NCBI RefSeq assembly: GCF_006345805.1
Contig: NC_043000.1
Coordinates: 37,386,001 to 37,450,000 of the forward strand
Length of the DNA stretch: 64,000 nt
From: Octopus sinensis
Lineage: Eukaryota
Direction of reading: 5' to 3'
A program made the position numbers and the translations under genes. This document shows positions 15,133 to 53,753 of this stretch, piece by piece. Position 1 is the stretch's first letter; every line of letters starts with the position of its first letter. The notes beneath the pieces were generated by a model. That model had not been told where the DNA came from. It ran no database searches and worked only from the letters and a program-made list of their open reading frames with translations.

Positions 15133-15327
15133 GTGTCGGTGGCACATAAAATCACCCACTACACTCTCGGAGTGGTTGGCGTTAGGAAGGGCATCCAGCT
15201 GTAGAAACACTACCAGATCTGACTGGCCTGGTGCAGCCTTCAGGCTCCCCAGACCCCAGTTGAACTGTCCAACCCATGCTAGCATGGAAAGCGGACGTTA
15301 AACGATGATGATGATGATGATGATGAT
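15133..15327 (+). mobile_element. RTE 3'-tail repeat copy
   Basis: Near-consensus tail with CpGs retained, ending ggacgttaaacgatgatgatg. Confidence 0.9.
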
Positions 15328-16557: not shown

Positions 16558-18779
16558 TTGAGAATGTATGGGAGAGAGTCTGCCGAATGTCGACCCAACA
16601 GAGGGACCAGCTATCCGAATTGATAGTATCTTGGTAGATAAAGCAATTAAGAGTATGAAGACAGGGAAAGCCCCTGGCCCATCAGGAGATGCTCAAAATA
16701 TCTGGCAGTGTCGGCTATAGCCTAGTCACCCATATAGTTAACCAGGTGACACACGAAGGAGTCATGCCCAATGACTGGTGCAGCAGCACCATAGTCAACT
16801 GCTACAAAGGTAAAGGTGATGCTTTAGATACAAATAATTGCAGAGGTATCAAGTTGTTGGATCAGATAATGAAGGTCATGGAGAGGGTCACAGCCCAACT
16901 AATTAGAGAGAGAGTCAGTTTAGATGAGATGCAGTTTGGGTTCATGCCAGGGAAAAGCACCACTCATGTTATATTTCTGGTAAGACAGCTGCAGGAGAAA
17001 TACCTAACCAAAGATAAACCTCTGTACCTGGCTTTCATTGACATGAAGAAAGCCTTTGACAGGGTCCCCCGATCCCTTATCTGGTGGTCAATGAGGAAAC
17101 TAGGGATAGATGAATGGTTAGTGAGAGGTGTGCAAGCTATGTACAGGGACGCTGTCAGTAAGGTGAGGGTTGGCAACGAGTACAGTGAAGAATTCCGAGT
17201 AGAGGTAGGTCCAGTCCTTAGCCCACCTCTTATTTATCATAGTCCTCCAGGCAATAACAGAGGAATTCAAGACTGGAAGCCCCTGGGAGCTCCTCTGTGC
17301 TGATGACCTTGGTCTCATTGCTGAGTCACTATCAGAACTAGAGGAGAAGTTTCAGGTGTGGAAACAAGGATTAAAATTGAAGGGCCTTAGAGTCAACCTA
17401 GCTAAAACCAAAACTGTAATAAGTAGGAAGGTAGATAAACCACAAACCCCTTCAGGTAGATGGCTCTGCTCGATCTGTAGAAAAAGCGTAGGTAGAAACT
17501 CTATAAGATGTACCCAGTGAAAGCTATGGACACATAAGAGGTGCAGCAATATCAAAGGAAGGCTAACTGGGAAGATAGTTTTTGTATGTGGCAGATGCTT
17601 AGGAGCAATAAACACTGAAAATGTGCAGAGAACAACTACCACATTCCAGGGAGAAAAACTAGAAGTAGTTGATAGCTTCCGTTAACTAGGTGCACTGAAA
17701 ATGTAGCTGCTAGAATAAGAATAGCCTGGGCAAAGTTCAGAGAACTCTTACCTCTGCCGGTGACAAAAGGCCTCTTGCTCAGAGTAAAAGGTAGACTGTA
17801 TGACACATGTGTATGAATAGCCATGCTACATGGCAGTGAAACATGGGCCATGACTGCTGAGGACATACATAAGCTTGCAAGGAATGAAGCCAGTATGCTC
17901 CGCTAGATGTGTAATGTCAGTGTGCATACTCGACAGAGTGTAAGTACCTTCAGAGAAAAGTTGGACCTAAGAAGTATTAGATGTGTTGTGCAAGAGAGAC
18001 AACTGTGCTGGTATGGTCATGTGGCAAGAATGGATGAGGATAGCTGTGCCACACCCAAGCAGTTGAGGGAACCTGTGGAAGAAGTAGACCCAGGAAGACC
18101 TGGGATGAAATGGTGAAGCATGACCTTCGAAACTTAGGCCTCACTGAAGCAATGACTAGTGGCTGAGACTTGGAATTATGCTGTGCTTGAGAAGACCCAG
18201 CAAGCCAAGTAGACCGTTAACCTGTGGCCTATGCCAGCGGTGTAACCAGCCCACTTATGCATACCTTCCCTTCATTGGACACTAAATTCTGCTTGCAAAG
18301 ACCTGTTGAGGCAAGTGAAATCGAAATTGAAATCAAATTCGATGACTGGCATCTGTGCCAGTGGAGCGCTAAGAGCACTATCCAAGTGTGATCATTTCCA
18401 GAACAGCTAACTGGCTTCCATGCTGGTGGCACATAAAAAACACCACTTGAGCATGATCGTTATCAGCGTTGCCTTACTGGCACTTTTGCCAGTGGCACTT
18501 GAAAAATATTCAAGTGAGGTCGTTGCCAGTGCCGCGTAAAAAACACCATTTGAGCATGGCTGTTGCCAGTACCGCCTGACTGGCCCTCATGCCGGTGGCA
18601 CGTAAAAGCACCCACTACACTCTCAGAGTGGTTGGCATTAGGAAGGGCATCCAGCTGTAGAAACTCTGCCAGATCAGATTGGAGCCTGGTGCAGCCATCT
18701 GGTTCACCAGTCCACAGTCAAATTGTCCAACCCATACCAGCATAGAAAGCGGACGTTAAACAATTATGATGATGATGAT
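16558..18779 (+). mobile_element. 5'-truncated RTE-clade LINE: reverse transcriptase pseudogene, 3' UTR and (GAT)n tail
   Basis: KTGKAPGPSG, YKGKGDALDTNNCRGIKLL, QFGFMPGKSTT, FIDMKKAFDRVP, ADDL, LHGSETW, LCWYGHVARM, with frameshifts and stops. The 3' UTR ends ggacgttaaacaattatgatgatg. Confidence 0.95.
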
Positions 18780-20896: not shown

Positions 20897-21347
20897 TCTT
20901 TATATATAAAAGTGAAGTTGTGTGTCTGTCTCCTACGATTTAGATTCCTAACTACTAACTATCTTATAGTCGTGATTCATATCGAGCCCTTCTGGGTATT
21001 AGCGCGCGTCTACAATGAGTCTACGATTTAAAAAAAAATTACCATCATTTTTTCCATTTTAATGCATTTTTTCGCTATTATATAAGGGAAGTAACTCTCT
21101 AAAAATGTCTACGAGTCAACGATTTAAAAAAAAAATTACCATCATTTTTTATTCCATTTTAATGCATTTTTTCGCTATTATATAAGGGAAGTAACTCTCT
21201 AAAAATGTCTACGAGTCAACGATTTAAAAAAAAAATTACCATCATTTTTTATTCCATTTTTAATGCATTTTTTTGCTATAACTCTCTAAAAATGCTTATA
21301 TAGTTATTTCCCTTACAAACCCGAGCAACGCCGGGCGATACTGCTAG
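20897..21347 (+). mobile_element. Non-autonomous Helitron, copy 3, with an internal ~96-100-bp tandem repeat
   Basis: 5' TCTTTATATATAAAAG. 3' hairpin and CTAG (21344-21347) identical to copy 1. Repeat units start at 21017, 21113 and 21213. Confidence 0.9.
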
Positions 21348-22454
21348 TTATTAATATAGTAACAAAGTTGGCACAATTCATAGAAATTGGTTAAAATGGA
21401 AAATACACACACATAGAGAGAATATATTTTATTGTCATTGAGAAGTATATTCCCATATTCCTTAGCATTTTTCTTGCTAAAAATAAAGTTTGCCTTCAAC
21501 ACCTCTTATGGTTTTAAAATTGTTCTAGATAAAGTTTGAAAAATTTTAAGCTTAACATTATTGACTACATAATAGCTATTATGTAAAGCTGATTGGAGGT
21601 TGAGATTAAGGACCAAGTATCAAAACACAGGTTTCCCAAGTTTTACTTTGAATCAAGTTTTCCTCAACAACACTCTGTTTTCCTTTTTAACATTTCATTT
21701 GCTTACATAAGTACTCACACACACAACCATGGTGAGGGATCACTATAGCCCTATGCTTTTATTCTCATTTGAATTCCCATGAATTCAAATTTTCTAACAT
21801 TCCTCAGAAAGACTCGAGCATCACATATATCTGCAATGATTCATGTAAAAGTCTGAGGCATTATGTCTACATGAATAAATAATCTATGTAAGTACGTACA
21901 ATAATTATGTAAGATGGATTCTCTTGTAAGTACTGACATTTCTGTCTTTTATTCTCTTTTTCTTTTCATCTCCAGTAAAAGTACTTTTGAGCCAACAAAG
22001 CTGCTGATACCTCTGTAACAGCACGGCTCCTGTCCACCAAAAAAAATATTTAGTCACTAAAGCTGTTGAATTATGAGAGTAAAGAAATTGTTAATGGTGA
22101 CATACTGAAACAAATTAAGGAGGTCAGTATAGTAATTACAATGAGGAACAAAAAGGGTTCAAATCTTAATTTATCACAAATTTCCAAAAATTTAGTGCAA
22201 AACATTCACTTGCTAATCTACTCTCTGATAAGGATATCCGGCATTATCCTGTTTATTGAGATGCATACACTGCTTAAAACTTTTACCTTTTTGTTTTATG
22301 TGTATCTATTTCTAACTACAATTTAGTTTCATTTATATATTCTCCACTCAGATTCTTTATTTTCATAAATACATACATTCATTCATTCATTCAATATTAT
22401 TCATATCCGTTACAGTATTTAAAACTTTGAGTATGTATATGAAATAGTAATAAA

Positions 22455-22515
22455 CTTTTCTTTTTGTTGCAGGTAAGTATTATGCTCTGAGTTCTGAAGA
22501 AATTTGAAGGTAAAA
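22455..22515 (+). promoter_or_regulatory. Candidate recursive splice site (3'ss directly joined to a 5'ss) with a downstream cryptic donor
   Basis: cttttctttttgttgCAG|GTAAGT (AG 22471-22472), then AAG|GTAAAA at 22509/22510. Same strand as Shal. Confidence 0.55.
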
Positions 22516-22764
22516 AAGCATAAGAAAGAAATGGAAATATGGAAAATGAAGTGGTATTTTGTACAGAGAATCTTGGTAGATTAAGTAAGCTGTTTCCAGT
22601 TTCTATTAATGACCAGCCAATGTGGGGGGGAAAAAAAGAGGAATTATATTCCAGCCCACTTTGAAATTGCTTATGAAGAATGGTTTATTATGATAAGATC
22701 TTTGTTTTACTTAATTTGGTGATAAAATTTTATTTTTCATGAAAATCTTTTAACATTTCCAGTC

Positions 22765-23035
22765 AGCATCAGCATCATCGTTTAATGTCCATTTTCCTTG
22801 CTGGTATGGGGTGGACAGTTTGACAGGAGGTGGCAAGGCCAGGCAGTGCACCAGGTTTCATTGTCTGTTTTGGTATGATTTCTACAGCTTGATGCCCTTG
22901 TTAATGCCAACCACTTTAAAAAGTGTACTAGGTGCTTTTTTTATGTGTCACCAGCACTAGTGCTTTTTACATAGCACCAGCATAAGTGCTGTTTATGTGG
23001 CACTGATTCCACTGCTTTTTATGTGGCACCACATA
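22765..23035 (-). mobile_element. RTE 3'-tail repeat copy with tandem ~25-bp modules
   Basis: catcatcgtttaatgtccattttccttgctggtatggg...gatgcccttgttaatgccaaccac, then repeated ttttatgtggcacc units. Confidence 0.8.
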
Positions 23036-28019: not shown

Positions 28020-29130
28020 GGGTTACAACCAGTTTTCTTAGATATCAAGGAGATTTCTCAATTAATGCAACTCTGGTAGTTACACCAATCTCAATAACTG
28101 TTAAGTCTGTTGGTGACAGTACCAAGGACACCTAGAACAACTGGGATTACTTTTGTAGAAAGTATTTTTTTAGTCAAATCCTGGTATTTTTGTATTTTCT
28201 TCTGTTCTTTGACCACTACATTCATGCCCACAGATGTAGCTGTATCTATGATGATGCATTCCTTTTTCCCTTGTCCAGAATTGTAAAATCTGGTCAGCTG
28301 GCATGAATTTTGCAATCATCTGCCTGCGCATTAAAATCCATAAAACCTTATACTGGTTATTCTCTATTACACTTTTTGGTTGATGTTCATAACATTTTCT
28401 TCCTACTTCAAATCCCCTGTGCAGTAATATGTCCCAGGTAGTGCCTTGGTCACACAGTCCATGTCTGCATCTATGTTCTCATCATCATTATCGTTTAACA
28501 TCTGTTCTCCATGCTAGCATGGGTTGGACTGTTCGACTGGGGATCTGGGAAGCCAGAAGGCTGCACCAGGCTCTGGTCTTATCTGGCAATGTTTCTACAG
28601 CTGGATGCCCTTCCTAACGCCAACCACTCCATGAGTGTAGTGGGTGCTTTTTACATGCCACCTGCACTGGAGCCAGGCGAGGCTGGCATTGGCCACGGTC
28701 GGATTGGTGCATTTTACGTGCCACCGACACGGAAGCCAGTCAAGGCGGCGCTGGCATCGGCCACGATTCGGATAGTGCTTTTAACGTATCTCCAGTCCAG
28801 GGGTCCTGGCATCTGCCGGGTGCCAGTCATAGGATTGGTTCAATTTCGATTCCGATTTCGATTTCACTTGCCCCAACAGGTCTTCGCAAGCAAAGGGGGG
28901 TTGACATAGGTGCCTGTCGTCGGATGAGGTTCGATATATGGGTAAAAGGATTACAGGAACTTATTATGTACATAATAGATTTCTCTTTCTCATTACATAC
29001 TCTGCACTTGGCACTTTTTTGTGGATTTGACCATAATAACTGGTTTTGAGCAGCCATTGTGAGTCCTTTCATTTCTTTCTTAAGGTCTCCATTCTTCAAC
29101 CATAACCAAAACTTCTCAACTGCTAAGTCC
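28020..29130 (-). mobile_element. R4/Dong-clade LINE fragment interrupted by an RTE-tail insertion
   Basis: NGDLKKEMKGLTMAAQNQ...KCRVC...YIISSC (29099-28940) resumes after the insert as EHRCRH...YEHQPKSVIENNQYKVLW (28479-28340), then IIIDTA...KVIPVVLGVLGTV. Confidence 0.8.
28480..28938 (-). mobile_element. RTE 3'-tail repeat nested inside the Dong fragment
   Basis: Near-consensus tail with many CpGs. It splits the Dong reading frame between the zinc finger and the RHD motif. Confidence 0.85.
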
Positions 29131-40371: not shown

Positions 40372-41458
40372 CCCTTTCGTTACTATATTTCTGACCAAAA
40401 TACACCCCTTATGTGTTTCAATTAATTTCTAACATAATCATAAATTTAGTCTGGTTTCATTAAACAACTATAACTTTTTTATTTATCAATATATTAATCT
40501 GATTTTTGGAAGATAATTTAATGAAATATTCTCAACCAATTCTATACTATAATTTTTGTCACAAAGTGACTCTAATTGCAGGTAGATACAGGTAAATTCA
40601 ACAAAATATAAAATTATTAAAATTTTGTTCAAACATCGCTATAGAAAATGGGTTATTAGCTAATATTCAATTGGGTATACAACAAAATTTTACGACAGAA
40701 TTTGTTATTCTGGGTAACTTTCTGATACCCATGATAATATTTATGGCAAAATAGTCTTAATTTCATTTAAGGTTGTGGGAAACCACTAACTATCCTTTCT
40801 TTCGCTTTGTTTACATTTAGCGTAACGGTTCGTTTCTGCCGTAATGATTTCAAATAGGCTCATTCAAAAAAGTAAAAAGAAATAGTCTAAGGCTTTACTC
40901 TCCTGGGAAAGTCTGTGGCTTGGTCCAGTTTCTTCAGAAAAATCACCGAAAGAAACAGTTTTTAAATTTTCACTCCATTCAGGTGCCAATTCATTTTCTT
41001 TATCGCTGTCGGAGCTCTCGGATTCACTGTTTTCACTTTCGGAAAATGAAACATCAGATTCATTATCAAATATCACATGCTTTTTTTTTTTCAGTCATAG
41101 AGTTAGATTTATGAAGGTCTTCAGTAGAAAATCCTTCAAATTCTGACTCGCTGCTTGATATAATGAAATTCGTATCCATTTTTTGTCAGAATTACAAATT
41201 TTGAAAACACAATAGAAACAAATTTCGGAAAAAAATCTCCCAAAATTCACAGAAATAAAATTACACTTCGATTGTTGTACAAAACTGTAGTTGAACTGTT
41301 TACGAAGTATAATACATGTTTTCACGAATGTACTAAAGAGATTTGCTCTGATATTCTCATTTAAATATGAATAGGTAAATACGGGCGGGTTTGGGCAGTT
41401 TGGTCACATTAATCAAAATTTTTTTCGGGCGGCTTTGGGCAGTTTGGTAACGAAAGGG
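40372..41458 (-). mobile_element. Non-autonomous piggyBac derivative (1087 bp) retaining the transposase N-terminus
   Basis: Perfect 12-bp TIR CCCTTTCGTTAC/GTAACGAAAGGG with TTAA TSDs (40368-40371, 41459-41462). ORF 41076-40864 is acidic and carries FSEETGP...ALDYFFLLF. Subterminal gggcgg(g/c)tttgggcagtttggt repeats. Confidence 0.92.
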
Positions 41459-42485: not shown

Positions 42486-43148
42486 TTTAGCATTATGTCG
42501 TGCTTGAGAAGAAGACCCATCAAGCCAAGCAAAATCGCACTCGTAACAGATACTGGTGTCACAGACATGGCACTCATGCCAGTGGCATGTAAAAGGACCC
42601 ATTACATTCTTGGAGTGGTTAGCGTTAGGTAGGGCATCCAGCTGTAGAAACTATGTCAAATCAGATTGGTATCTGCAGCAATCTTCCAGCTTGCCAACCC
42701 CAGTCAAACTGTCCAACACATGCCAGCATGGTCAGTGGACATTAAATGATGATGATGATGATGATATATAAAATAAAAAAGCGTGAAAAAACTACACTCT
42801 TTTTTCACTCTTTTTTATATTTTATACATCCAACCACGTGCTTTCACACACCAACTCTGTCACCTATATATATCATCATCATCATCATTTAATGTCCACT
42901 GACTATGCTGGCATGTGTTGGACAGTTTGACTGGGGCTGGCAAGCTGGAAGGTTGCAGCAGATACCAATCTGATATGATATGGTTTCTACAGCTGGATGC
43001 CCTTCCTAACGCTAACCACTCTGAGAATGTAATAGGTCCTTTTACGTGCCACTGGCATGAGTGCCATTTGTGTGACACCAGTATCTGTTACGAGTGCAAT
43101 TTTGCTTGGCTTGATGGGTCTTCTTCTCAAGCACGACATAATGTTAAA
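42486..43148. repeat. Long inverted repeat: arms 42486-42770 and 42865-43148, built from an RTE 3' end
   Basis: Manual alignment gives 16 substitutions and one GAT indel over ~284 bp. The right element continues to ~43390. Confidence 0.92.
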
Positions 43149-50811: not shown

Positions 50812-52633
50812 CCCTTTAATCTGTCAAATGTGATGCTTATTCACATTATTTTGAATTATTCAGGTTCAAGAGAGGTGTCCACAATATTTGCTTGTAACTT
50901 TGTTAATTTTTTACATACAGATTTGGAATTTTGTCAGTGGGTGCTTATATACCAGTGGGTTATAGTTATGTAATTTTAGCTGATTTTGCTGATTAAATTT
51001 GACTTTTACAGGCAGGTAAATTTAATTAACAGGTGTAAAAGCAATAACATTATGGATAAACACTAAAATTGACATTCTTAATGCTTCTTACTTGTTTGAT
51101 TTGTTACTAAAATTATCCCAGATGTCAACCCTCAACAATTTTGCCAATTTTCAAGATGAGGTACATTAATTTGAATTAGTTAAAATTCAGGTATAATCAG
51201 TACAAGATTTGATTATTTCTCTATATTTCATTGAAAATAAAGTACAAAAATCTTTTACTAGACAATATACCATTGACTATGTACTCTTATACAATTTAAT
51301 GAATACATTTATATAATAGAATGCATCTAATAAAAAGAGCTCATTAGCAGGTGATGCAACTGTGAATACAGGTGTATAACATACTGAAAATTAATATGTA
51401 TTTCTCACTTTCACATATTTGTAATAAAATGAAACGAATATATGATAGTATAACTAACAAACAACAAAATATAGTTATGCCATATTTCTATCATGAAACT
51501 GTCCAAAGCACCCTTTACACAAGGGCACTTTGCAAAATGAAGACATATATGAGGTCTTGACCTGATATCCTTCTACAGTTTTTCTTTTTTGCAGCAACCA
51601 GTCTGCAAACTTTTTTCTTCCATTTATTTTTTCCACTTCATGGAAGACAATATTTTCTCTGTTGACATCCACCTCAGTTAATTTTGCTTTTCTCCTAGTT
51701 CTGTGCTTTCTGGAAGAAAAGCCCTATGTAACTGAGATGCAATGTCAGCCCAAAATTTCAAATGGTCATGGTTCTTTGGTGGCTGAGGTACTGTGTGGCT
51801 TTTTACATAAACAATATATGAATTAACTATACTTAGACATAATTCAGGAGATATATAGATCACCATACCTTATATCAGGATTCCAACAACTCCACAGTTG
51901 AGGAAGCTGCTTGAGGTCAAACATAATGTTTAGAGTAAAAAGAAGTTTGCATTTACGCAGTATCAGTTGGCTGCCATAGTGGATCAGGTCTCCCACAGAT
52001 AGAAATTATGTGTTGAGCATATTTGTCTCCTCCATGACAGTTTCAAAAAACTTTTCGGTAAGAATAAAAATAAATAGTCCAATGGTTGAACATCAGGAGG
52101 TAGATCATATTGTGGACCAGTCTTTTCTGTGAAATCGGGAATTCCAGTTGATGTAGTAAACTTCAACCATGTTGCCGTAATGTTTTCAATATCATTTTCA
52201 TCACTTTCATTTCTATTACTTTCATTATCAAAATATTCCTTGTCCAGCAAAGATTCATAAATGTCAATATGATTTGTCTGAAGACAAAATCACTGTTGCT
52301 TGTGTTTGTATTTTGTACATCATCAAAAGTAAAACCATTGAAGTCAGAATTGCAACTTGCTGATGGCATATTGTTAAAAACTAAAATATATACTTCTCTT
52401 CAAACATTGAAAAAAAAACCAAGAAGTCTCAAAACTTTCACCATATTTTTACTTGAATAATGGTGGGAAAGGCTTTATCTTATATTATCTCAAAGCTACA
52501 AGAATTCAGTAATGTGATTTGTTTATTTTTTAGCGATTTTGTAGGGGAATCAGATATGGCTGGATTTGGCCAGTTCAAACAAATACAGGAGAATAATTTT
52601 TGGCCAGTTTTGGCTGGTCTAAACACTAAAGAG
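50812..52633 (-). mobile_element. Internally deleted piggyBac element with N- and C-terminal transposase remnants
   Basis: TTAA|CCCTTTA...TAAAGAG|TTAA ends. Minus ORFs: PDFTEKTGP...PLDYLFLF (N-terminus), IVNSYIVY (DDE C-terminus), KTSYMSSFCKVPLCKGCFGQFH (cysteine-rich domain). Confidence 0.8.
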
Positions 52634-53230: not shown

Positions 53231-53590
53231 TTTATCTTACCTTTTTTAATGAATTCTAATGCACCTGAGCACTGTTTACAATAAGCTTATTATATTCTAT
53301 GTTACTAACACTTCATTAGGTCTCAAGACAGGAAAATTCCATATGTTTCAGTTCAACTAATTTTGAGACATAGACTAAAGATTCTCTGGGAATGATATAT
53401 GTACAAGAGATAACTGTTCTTTACAAAAAGATTGCCTTTTCATAAAATACTGCTACATCCAGAGTTAAGCACAAACTATATTTCCTTATATTTCAGAAAT
53501 AATTAAATAATTTCGTTGACTTTGTCATAGTTACATTTTGTAACTTTAGTTTCACTTGATTTACTCTATCATTATATACTTATTTTGTAG

Positions 53591-53753
53591 ATATGGTGAT
53601 ATGGTACCAAACACAATAACTGGTAAAATAGTTGGTGGTGTGTGTTCCCTGAGTGGTGTATTGGTTATTGCATTACCAGTGCCTGTAATTGTTTCAAACT
53701 TTAGTCGTATTTATCATCAGAACCAAAGAGCAGACAAACGCAAGGCACAAAAG
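53591..53753 (+). CDS. Shal: Internal coding exon of a Shal/Kv4 (KCND-family) voltage-gated K+ channel alpha subunit: pore loop, S6 and proximal C-terminus
   Basis: Translates as (G)[54 protein letters not shown], a diagnostic Kv4 sequence. Acceptor ...tatacttattttgtAG at 53589-53590; donor AAG|GTAAAT at 53754. Length 163 nt, starts in phase 2 inside the first Gly of GYG, ends in phase 0. Confidence 0.97.

Follow-up and report, generated by a model that had tools for sequence, protein, structure and literature searches.

The window, by which we mean the whole 64,000-nt stretch of Octopus sinensis DNA analyzed here, contains a splice acceptor fused directly to a consensus splice donor, on the sense strand of a giant intron in the Shal/Kv4 channel gene. 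All of the sequence-level hallmarks of a ratchet point are present at this junction, from the form of the fused motif to the short stop-containing unit that follows it. We tentatively favor the view that it is a recursive splice site serving stepwise removal of the Shal intron, although we put this at slightly under an even chance; the main rival is a motif assembled by chance. Ratchet points as described to date combine an acceptor fused to a donor, a host intron of great length, an ultraconserved motif, and RNA intermediates (PMC8605326; 10.1101/006163; PMC6110457). They are accompanied by a cryptic RS-exon of ~50 nt whose downstream donor is weaker than the one recreated by the first splicing step, leading to donor competition (PMC8605326). 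The content of these RS-exons is poorly conserved and is either out of frame or interrupted by stops (PMC8605326; 10.1101/006163; PMC6110457).

The initial annotation had described a pyrimidine tract and AG joined to a perfect donor, a second donor 37 nt later, and a GAAGAA motif between the two, all on the strand of the gene. Slices of the window confirmed each of these elements to the base. The pyrimidine tract CTTTTCTTTTTGTTGC (22455-22470, + strand) has pyrimidines at 13 of its 16 positions and runs into the candidate acceptor AG at 22471-22472; together they form CTTTTCTTTTTGTTGCAG (22455-22472), which abuts the donor GTAAGTAT at 22473-22480. The resulting candidate ratchet point, CTTTTCTTTTTGTTGCAG/GTAAGTAT (22455-22480, with a slash marking each splice junction here and below), fits the acceptor-donor fusion pyrimidine tract-NCAG/GTRAGT and has the form (Y)n-TT-G-CAG/GTAAGTAT. 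Acceptor positions -6 and -5 are TT and position -3 is C; TT occupies positions -5 and -6 in 196 of 197 (99.5%) fly ratchet points (10.1101/006163). A putative branch point, GTAAT (22447-22451, +), places its A at 22450, 22 nt 5’ of the AG. This pentamer is possibly branch-point-like, agreeing with yUnAy at four of five positions, and the stretch from its A to the acceptor is free of AG. The donor GTAAGTAT can pair with the 5’ end of U1 over eight intronic positions (to +8). The 37-nt unit between the donors, a candidate cryptic RS-exon, is GTAAGTATTATGCTCTGAGTTCTGAAGAAATTTGAAG (22473-22509, +) and has stops in all three frames. The second donor, AAG/GTAAAA, has its junction at 22509/22510 and occupies 22510-22515 (+), where GTAAAAAAGCA begins. 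The purine-rich hexamer GAAGAA lies at 22496-22501 (+); it occurs in ~1.9% of 37-nt stretches, and we gave it no weight because it was chosen post hoc among many enhancer-like hexamers.

We scored the splice sites with a generic position weight matrix (PWM) rather than an octopus-trained one. By this measure the two donors flanking the 37-nt unit differ widely. Once joined to exon 1 (...CTAGG), the first would read AGG/GTAAGTAT and score 6.5 bits, compared with 6.6 bits for AGG/GTGAGT, the natural exon-1 donor of O. vulgaris (locus L001). AAG/GTAAAA scores 2.1 bits, compared with 3.7 bits for AAG/GTAAAT, the real donor of the S6 exon, and is the best donor within 250 nt 3’ of the site. The unit is a short candidate exon (37 nt) whose own donor is weaker than the recreated one (2.1 versus 6.5 bits), and because the recreated donor is so much stronger, skipping of the 37 nt is predicted.

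The host gene and the position of the site within it agreed with what had been claimed: exon matches and tblastn place the junction on the sense strand of a giant phase-2 intron of Shal/Kv4, inside the transcription unit, between exon 1 and the S6 exon. The only Shal/Kv4 exon in the window, at 53591-53753 (+), runs from the last part of the selectivity filter through S6 into the beginning of the C-terminus. Entry is in phase 2 (ttattttgtag/A TAT GGT GAT ATG...), and exit is through the donor AAG/GTAAAT (CAA AAG/gtaaat). Its 54 residues, ending ...RADKRKAQK, are 100% identical to the Shal models of O. bimaculoides (X2, P0012) and O. sinensis (P0009) and match the Pfam family Ion_trans; among PDB structures they match Kv4.2 and Kv4.3 best, better than Kv1, Kv2 or Kv3. 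The host gene is thus a Shal/Kv4 (KCND) channel. A tblastn search with residues 1-369 of O. bimaculoides Shal found no exon-1 coding sequence in the window. Exon 1 therefore lies outside it, and 1-53590 (+), which ends in the acceptor letters above, is a portion of the giant intron between exon 1 and the S6 exon.

Exon 1 is a single exon of 369 codons that ends ...ACA CTA GG, and the phase-2 intron splits the selectivity filter as TLG/YGD. The intron begins GTGAGTAAC in O. vulgaris (L001) and in another Octopus (L002-L006), and GTAAGTAAA in Argonauta hians (L007). The O. vulgaris locus, comprising exon 1 with 10 kb flanks, has no overlap with the window; its 10 kb of intron therefore adds to ours, and the intron exceeds 63.6 kb. 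In Argonauta hians the orthologous intron measures 151,132 nt and lies on one strand of one contig (BAAFZT010000053.1: 549211-700342; L007 and L008). The O. bimaculoides Shal gene (X1, P0196) spans 434 kb, while the O. sinensis model P0009 covers 116.5 kb from 52269 to the gene end. From these two figures we infer an Octopus intron of roughly 0.3 Mb, an estimate that mixes two species and ignores possible 5’-UTR exons. The candidate thus has the sense orientation within a very long intron (>63.6 kb here and 151 kb in Argonauta), and it sits 31.1 kb 5’ of the S6 acceptor, in approximately the last tenth of the intron.

Existing annotations treat this gene in several ways. The O. sinensis model P0009 (‘KCND1’, 397 aa) does not include exon 1 and opens instead with a 35-residue exon, MICLKTK...ADGIL, that matches 52269-52373 (+) with no mismatch and would end in a very weak donor, TT/GTTAAA. 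The exact match narrows the origin of the window from coleoids in general to O. sinensis or a very close relative. This opening exon probably reflects annotation patching where the giant intron divides the gene. The O. vulgaris and Argonauta annotations list the Shal halves as separate genes. The S6 exon is also covered by a match to the Rfam family RF00485 (K_chan_RES, potassium-channel RNA editing signal) at 53587-53699 (+), with 80.4 bits against a gathering threshold of 51. The match starts 4 nt inside the intron, and several of its pairs are non-canonical. It seems to reflect homology of the coding sequence (GYGDM...PVPVIVSNF) and not an editing hairpin.

The initial annotation had further proposed that retention of the 37-nt exon would stop translation at the selectivity filter through the phase-2 join GG/G TAA. 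The stop is real and would cut the protein at TLG in the filter. It is also automatic, and adds no evidence for the site, since any GTAAGT or GTGAGT entered in phase 2 gives TAA or TGA. Shal’s own exon-1 donor yields an equal stop, GG/GTGA in Octopus and GG/GTAA in Argonauta, and a transcript retaining the intron would specify the very TLG-stop product that including the 37 nt would give. The stop that the exon-1 ORF forms with its own donor can be read at 11100-11115 of L001, 2245-2260 of L002 and 11100-11115 of L007. Numerous 369-residue ‘proteins’ of molluscan and other origin are exon-1 ORFs stopping in their own donor in this way, which explains why the protein collection lists ‘Shal’ proteins of 369 residues by the dozen and from many phyla. 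They mark a phase-2 intron in the selectivity filter, and the exon 1-S6 intron is ancient.

The surroundings of the site are repeat-free, as claimed, in that 22300-22760 has no second copy inside the window. The nearest repeat is a SINE-like element of ~190 nt, a copy of which (22763-22963) starts 290 nt 3’ of the candidate site. This element has at least ten other copies in both orientations, 72-77% identical (for example at 42874-43064, 18590-18778, 15138-15320 and 28480-28668). We considered three other identities for the site. Membership in a repeat family was set aside on the lack of another copy in the 64-kb window; a low-copy family would be detectable only on a wider scale. Coding sequence on either strand was rejected, with no Pfam match and no homologues: the ORF at 22066-22326 has no exact record and no homologue, and the 95-codon frame running across the site at 22400-22684 (-) has no match among 1.84 billion representatives. 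A structured RNA was rejected likewise, with no Rfam match nearby. Elsewhere in the window we noted a tandem repeat at 21017-21279 (period 100 nt, 2.7 copies, 95% matches), and transposon debris comprising a reverse-transcriptase fragment at 16689-17303 (+) (Pfam RVT_1, E = 7e-13) and two related antisense ORFs at 40864-41076 (-) and 51984-52250 (-) (32% identity, E = 1e-10). Both antisense ORFs have an acidic stretch followed by ...ETGP...LDYFF and no Pfam match; this arrangement may resemble the N-termini of piggyBac-type transposases.

The claim that this is the only such junction in the window was also borne out: of four AGGTRAGT sites on both strands, it alone follows a pyrimidine tract (pyrimidines at 13 of 16 positions, versus 5-7 of 16 at the other three). 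The site is the top-scoring juxtaposed 3’ and 5’ splice site on either window strand by the generic PWM. The 8-mer AGGTAAGT occurs three times in the window against 2.4 expected and is not enriched, and 3% of window 16-mers have at least 13 pyrimidines in 16. We estimated the chance of the combination from simulations that preserve either trinucleotide (order 2) or pentanucleotide (order 4) statistics. A pyrimidine tract followed by AGGTAAGT arose at 0.017 sites per 64-kb strand and in 1.6% of strands in the order-2 Markov simulation, and a PWM score at least as high as that observed had P = 0.026 (order 2) or 0.042 (order 4) per 64-kb strand. A donor at least as good as AAG/GTAAAA lies within 25-100 nt 3’ of 15% of random positions; multiplying a 3-4% chance for the site by this 15% gives a joint chance of ~0.5% per window strand. 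Across 118 kb of octopod Shal intron, which is little sequence for such a count, sites with both halves good number one on the sense strand versus none on the antisense strand. The antisense strand and the remaining 54 kb of octopod Shal intron sequence yielded no such site, and no second candidate appeared in the 53.6 kb of intron within the window. In an octopus genome that we take to be 2-3 Gb, these moderate chance figures still allow hundreds to thousands of equally good sites.

Comparison of the Octopus intron with the 10 kb at either end of the Argonauta intron gave no alignment outside the S6 exon and repeats; the S6 exon itself is 96% identical between the two, whereas the adjoining intron is unalignable. 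The ratchet-like motif is absent from both 10-kb Argonauta intron ends (L007 and L008), and a 26-mer across the junction has no exact match in metagenome contigs. A search for transcripts joining exon 1 to the 37-nt unit returned only the unspliced contigs L002-L006, in which exon 1 runs into GTGAGTAAC. No protein model in the collection requires the 37-nt exon.

The architecture of the site, its strand and its intron context can be read directly from the window; the steps of RNA processing that follow are predictions. After the polymerase had advanced ~22.5 kb into the window, exon definition would pick out the 37-nt unit at 22473-22509, with U2AF and U2 on the pyrimidine tract and AG and U1 on AAG/GTAAAA. 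Exon 1 (...ACA CTA GG) would then be spliced to 22473 and the bulk of the upstream intron would leave as a lariat. The predicted junction between exon 1 and the site reads ...ACACTAGG joined to GTAAGTATTATGC or, in its other read-out, ...ATGACGACACTAGG joined to GTAAGTATTATGCTC. This junction would recreate the strong donor AGG/GTAAGTAT, which would outcompete GTAAAA and be joined to the S6 acceptor at 53590; the final 31.1 kb would thereby be removed, and the 37 nt would never enter the mRNA. Use of the weaker donor instead would give a GG/G TAA mRNA, either a target of nonsense-mediated decay (NMD) or the template for a channel cut at TLG.

In large introns of fly, mosquito, bee, beetle and sea urchin this motif is 4-22 times commoner on the sense than on the antisense strand; in vertebrate large introns the ratio is 0.9-1.5, and no mollusc was included in that survey (PMC2773006). 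Such enrichment in insects and a deuterostome suggests that the mechanism of recursive splicing is ancestral. The antisense background in vertebrates, ~0.1 motif per 100 kb (PMC2773006), is close to our simulated rate. Among fly introns >40 kb, 63-70% contain a recursive site, and these sites tend to divide introns evenly (PMC6110457). Several features of the octopus site count against the recursive reading: its RS-exon is short (37 versus ~50 nt typical), the donor of that exon has no G at +5, and the site lies ~31 kb from the 3’ end of a ~0.3-Mb intron rather than splitting it evenly as in flies. Octopus also looks vertebrate-like in the size of its introns and in repeat load, which would weigh in the same direction.

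A chance juxtaposition, in an AT-rich intron of hundreds of kb that is rich in pyrimidine runs, would leave a site that is ignored or used rarely as splicing noise. We regard this as a serious contender, though short of an even chance: AGGTAAGT is about as frequent as chance predicts, 2-4% of 64-kb strands should contain the full motif, a comparable downstream donor follows 15% of random positions, vertebrate large introns are near their antisense background (PMC2773006), and the site is single in 53.6 kb and far from the intron midpoint. Against it stand the joint figure of ~0.5% per window strand for motif plus downstream donor, the empty antisense strand and other 54 kb of octopod Shal intron, and the fit of all of the secondary hallmarks (TT at -5/-6, C at -3, the AG-free stretch after GTAAT, U1 pairing to +8 and the weaker second donor). 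The relative weight that we give to recursive splicing and to chance follows from uncertainty over whether octopus resembles the invertebrates tested or the vertebrates.

Two other explanations assign the unit or its donor a different role. A regulated poison or truncation cassette exon would be included through GTAAAA, with NMD lowering Shal or with production of a T1-S5 fragment that has no S6, and the GTAAGT with which it opens would be incidental. The unit does have an acceptor, a donor and the purine-rich GAAGAA, its inclusion gives the TLG-stop, and in the vertebrate model RS-exons are binary switches whose inclusion brings premature stops (PMC5126111). We nevertheless consider this improbable: we saw neither a transcript nor a protein model carrying this exon, all of the 369-aa ‘TLG-stop’ proteins examined are exon-1 ORFs stopping in their own donor in unspliced DNA, and the far stronger recreated donor predicts skipping. 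Lower still do we rate a U1 snRNP docking site, either protecting a long pre-mRNA by telescripting or acting as a decoy, for which the acceptor would be irrelevant. U1 telescripting operates in long genes, GTAAGTAT is complementary to the U1 5’ end at eight intronic positions, and an AATAAA at 22449-22454 lies ~20 nt 5’ of the candidate donor. Within the window, however, the sense and antisense strands carry 14 and 10 copies of GTAAGT and 88 and 79 copies of AATAAA, respectively; such near-equal counts indicate no sense-strand bias or special pairing, and docking leaves a strong acceptor fused to the donor unexplained.

If the site is used as a ratchet point, recursive splicing would extend to the molluscs, a lineage in which it has not been described: the literature searched contains no report of it in cephalopods or molluscs. 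It would also support a bilaterian-ancestral mechanism kept where introns grew very large, and would provide a concrete site to examine in a gene governing neuronal excitability. Introns >100 kb abound in cephalopod genomes. A broader proposal is that cephalopods, as a first case in Lophotrochozoa, splice giant neuronal introns recursively and that donor choice at this site is regulated, such that neurons switch Shal off or make a T1-to-pore-helix fragment ending in TLG, a possible dominant-negative brake on the A-type current that co-assembles through T1; we consider this a long shot. A single motif alone leaves current knowledge unchanged, and its value is as a precise target for checking.

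The initial annotation had likened the site to Drosophila ratchet points and vertebrate RS-sites with their short cryptic exons, and the 37-nt unit and motif do match this published architecture. The closest likeness is to the Drosophila ratchet points of Ubx, kuz and Bx (Hatton 1998, Burnette 2005, Duff 2015, Joseph 2018/2021, Pai 2018). The octopus site shares their form (Y)n-TT-N-CAG/GTAAGT, their sense orientation in a neuronal gene with a very long host intron, and a short candidate cryptic exon on the 3’ side that contains stops and has the weaker donor. Fly recursive segments range from 2.6 to 63.6 kb, and the longest fly recursive intron is 133 kb (10.1101/006163); the last octopus segment, at 31.1 kb, falls within the fly range, whereas the whole intron is several times longer than the fly maximum. 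Unlike in Drosophila, the host is a cephalopod mollusc and the RS-exon is 37 nt rather than ~50 nt; the fly sites are defined by ultraconservation and RNA intermediates, and the octopus site by its motif. Fly Shal itself is not among the recursive genes of Pai et al. (S2 cells), and the literature searched contains no paper tying recursive splicing to KCND2.

Vertebrate RS-sites (CADM1/2, ROBO2, NTM and others; Sibley 2015, Blazquez 2018) and poison exons offer further parallels. Like the octopus site, vertebrate RS-sites have the junction YAG/GTRAGT, reside in introns >100 kb of brain-expressed genes and, as predicted for the octopus site, rely on RS-exon definition followed by donor competition, with inclusion bringing a premature stop (PMC5126111). 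They were identified by junction reads and saw-tooth coverage, whereas the octopus site comes from sequence, and the motif is so little enriched in vertebrates that alone it predicts poorly there. The 37-nt unit also resembles poison (NMD) cassette exons in being short, out of frame and stop-containing, with its own acceptor and donor. A poison exon, however, need not start with a consensus donor, as the octopus unit does.
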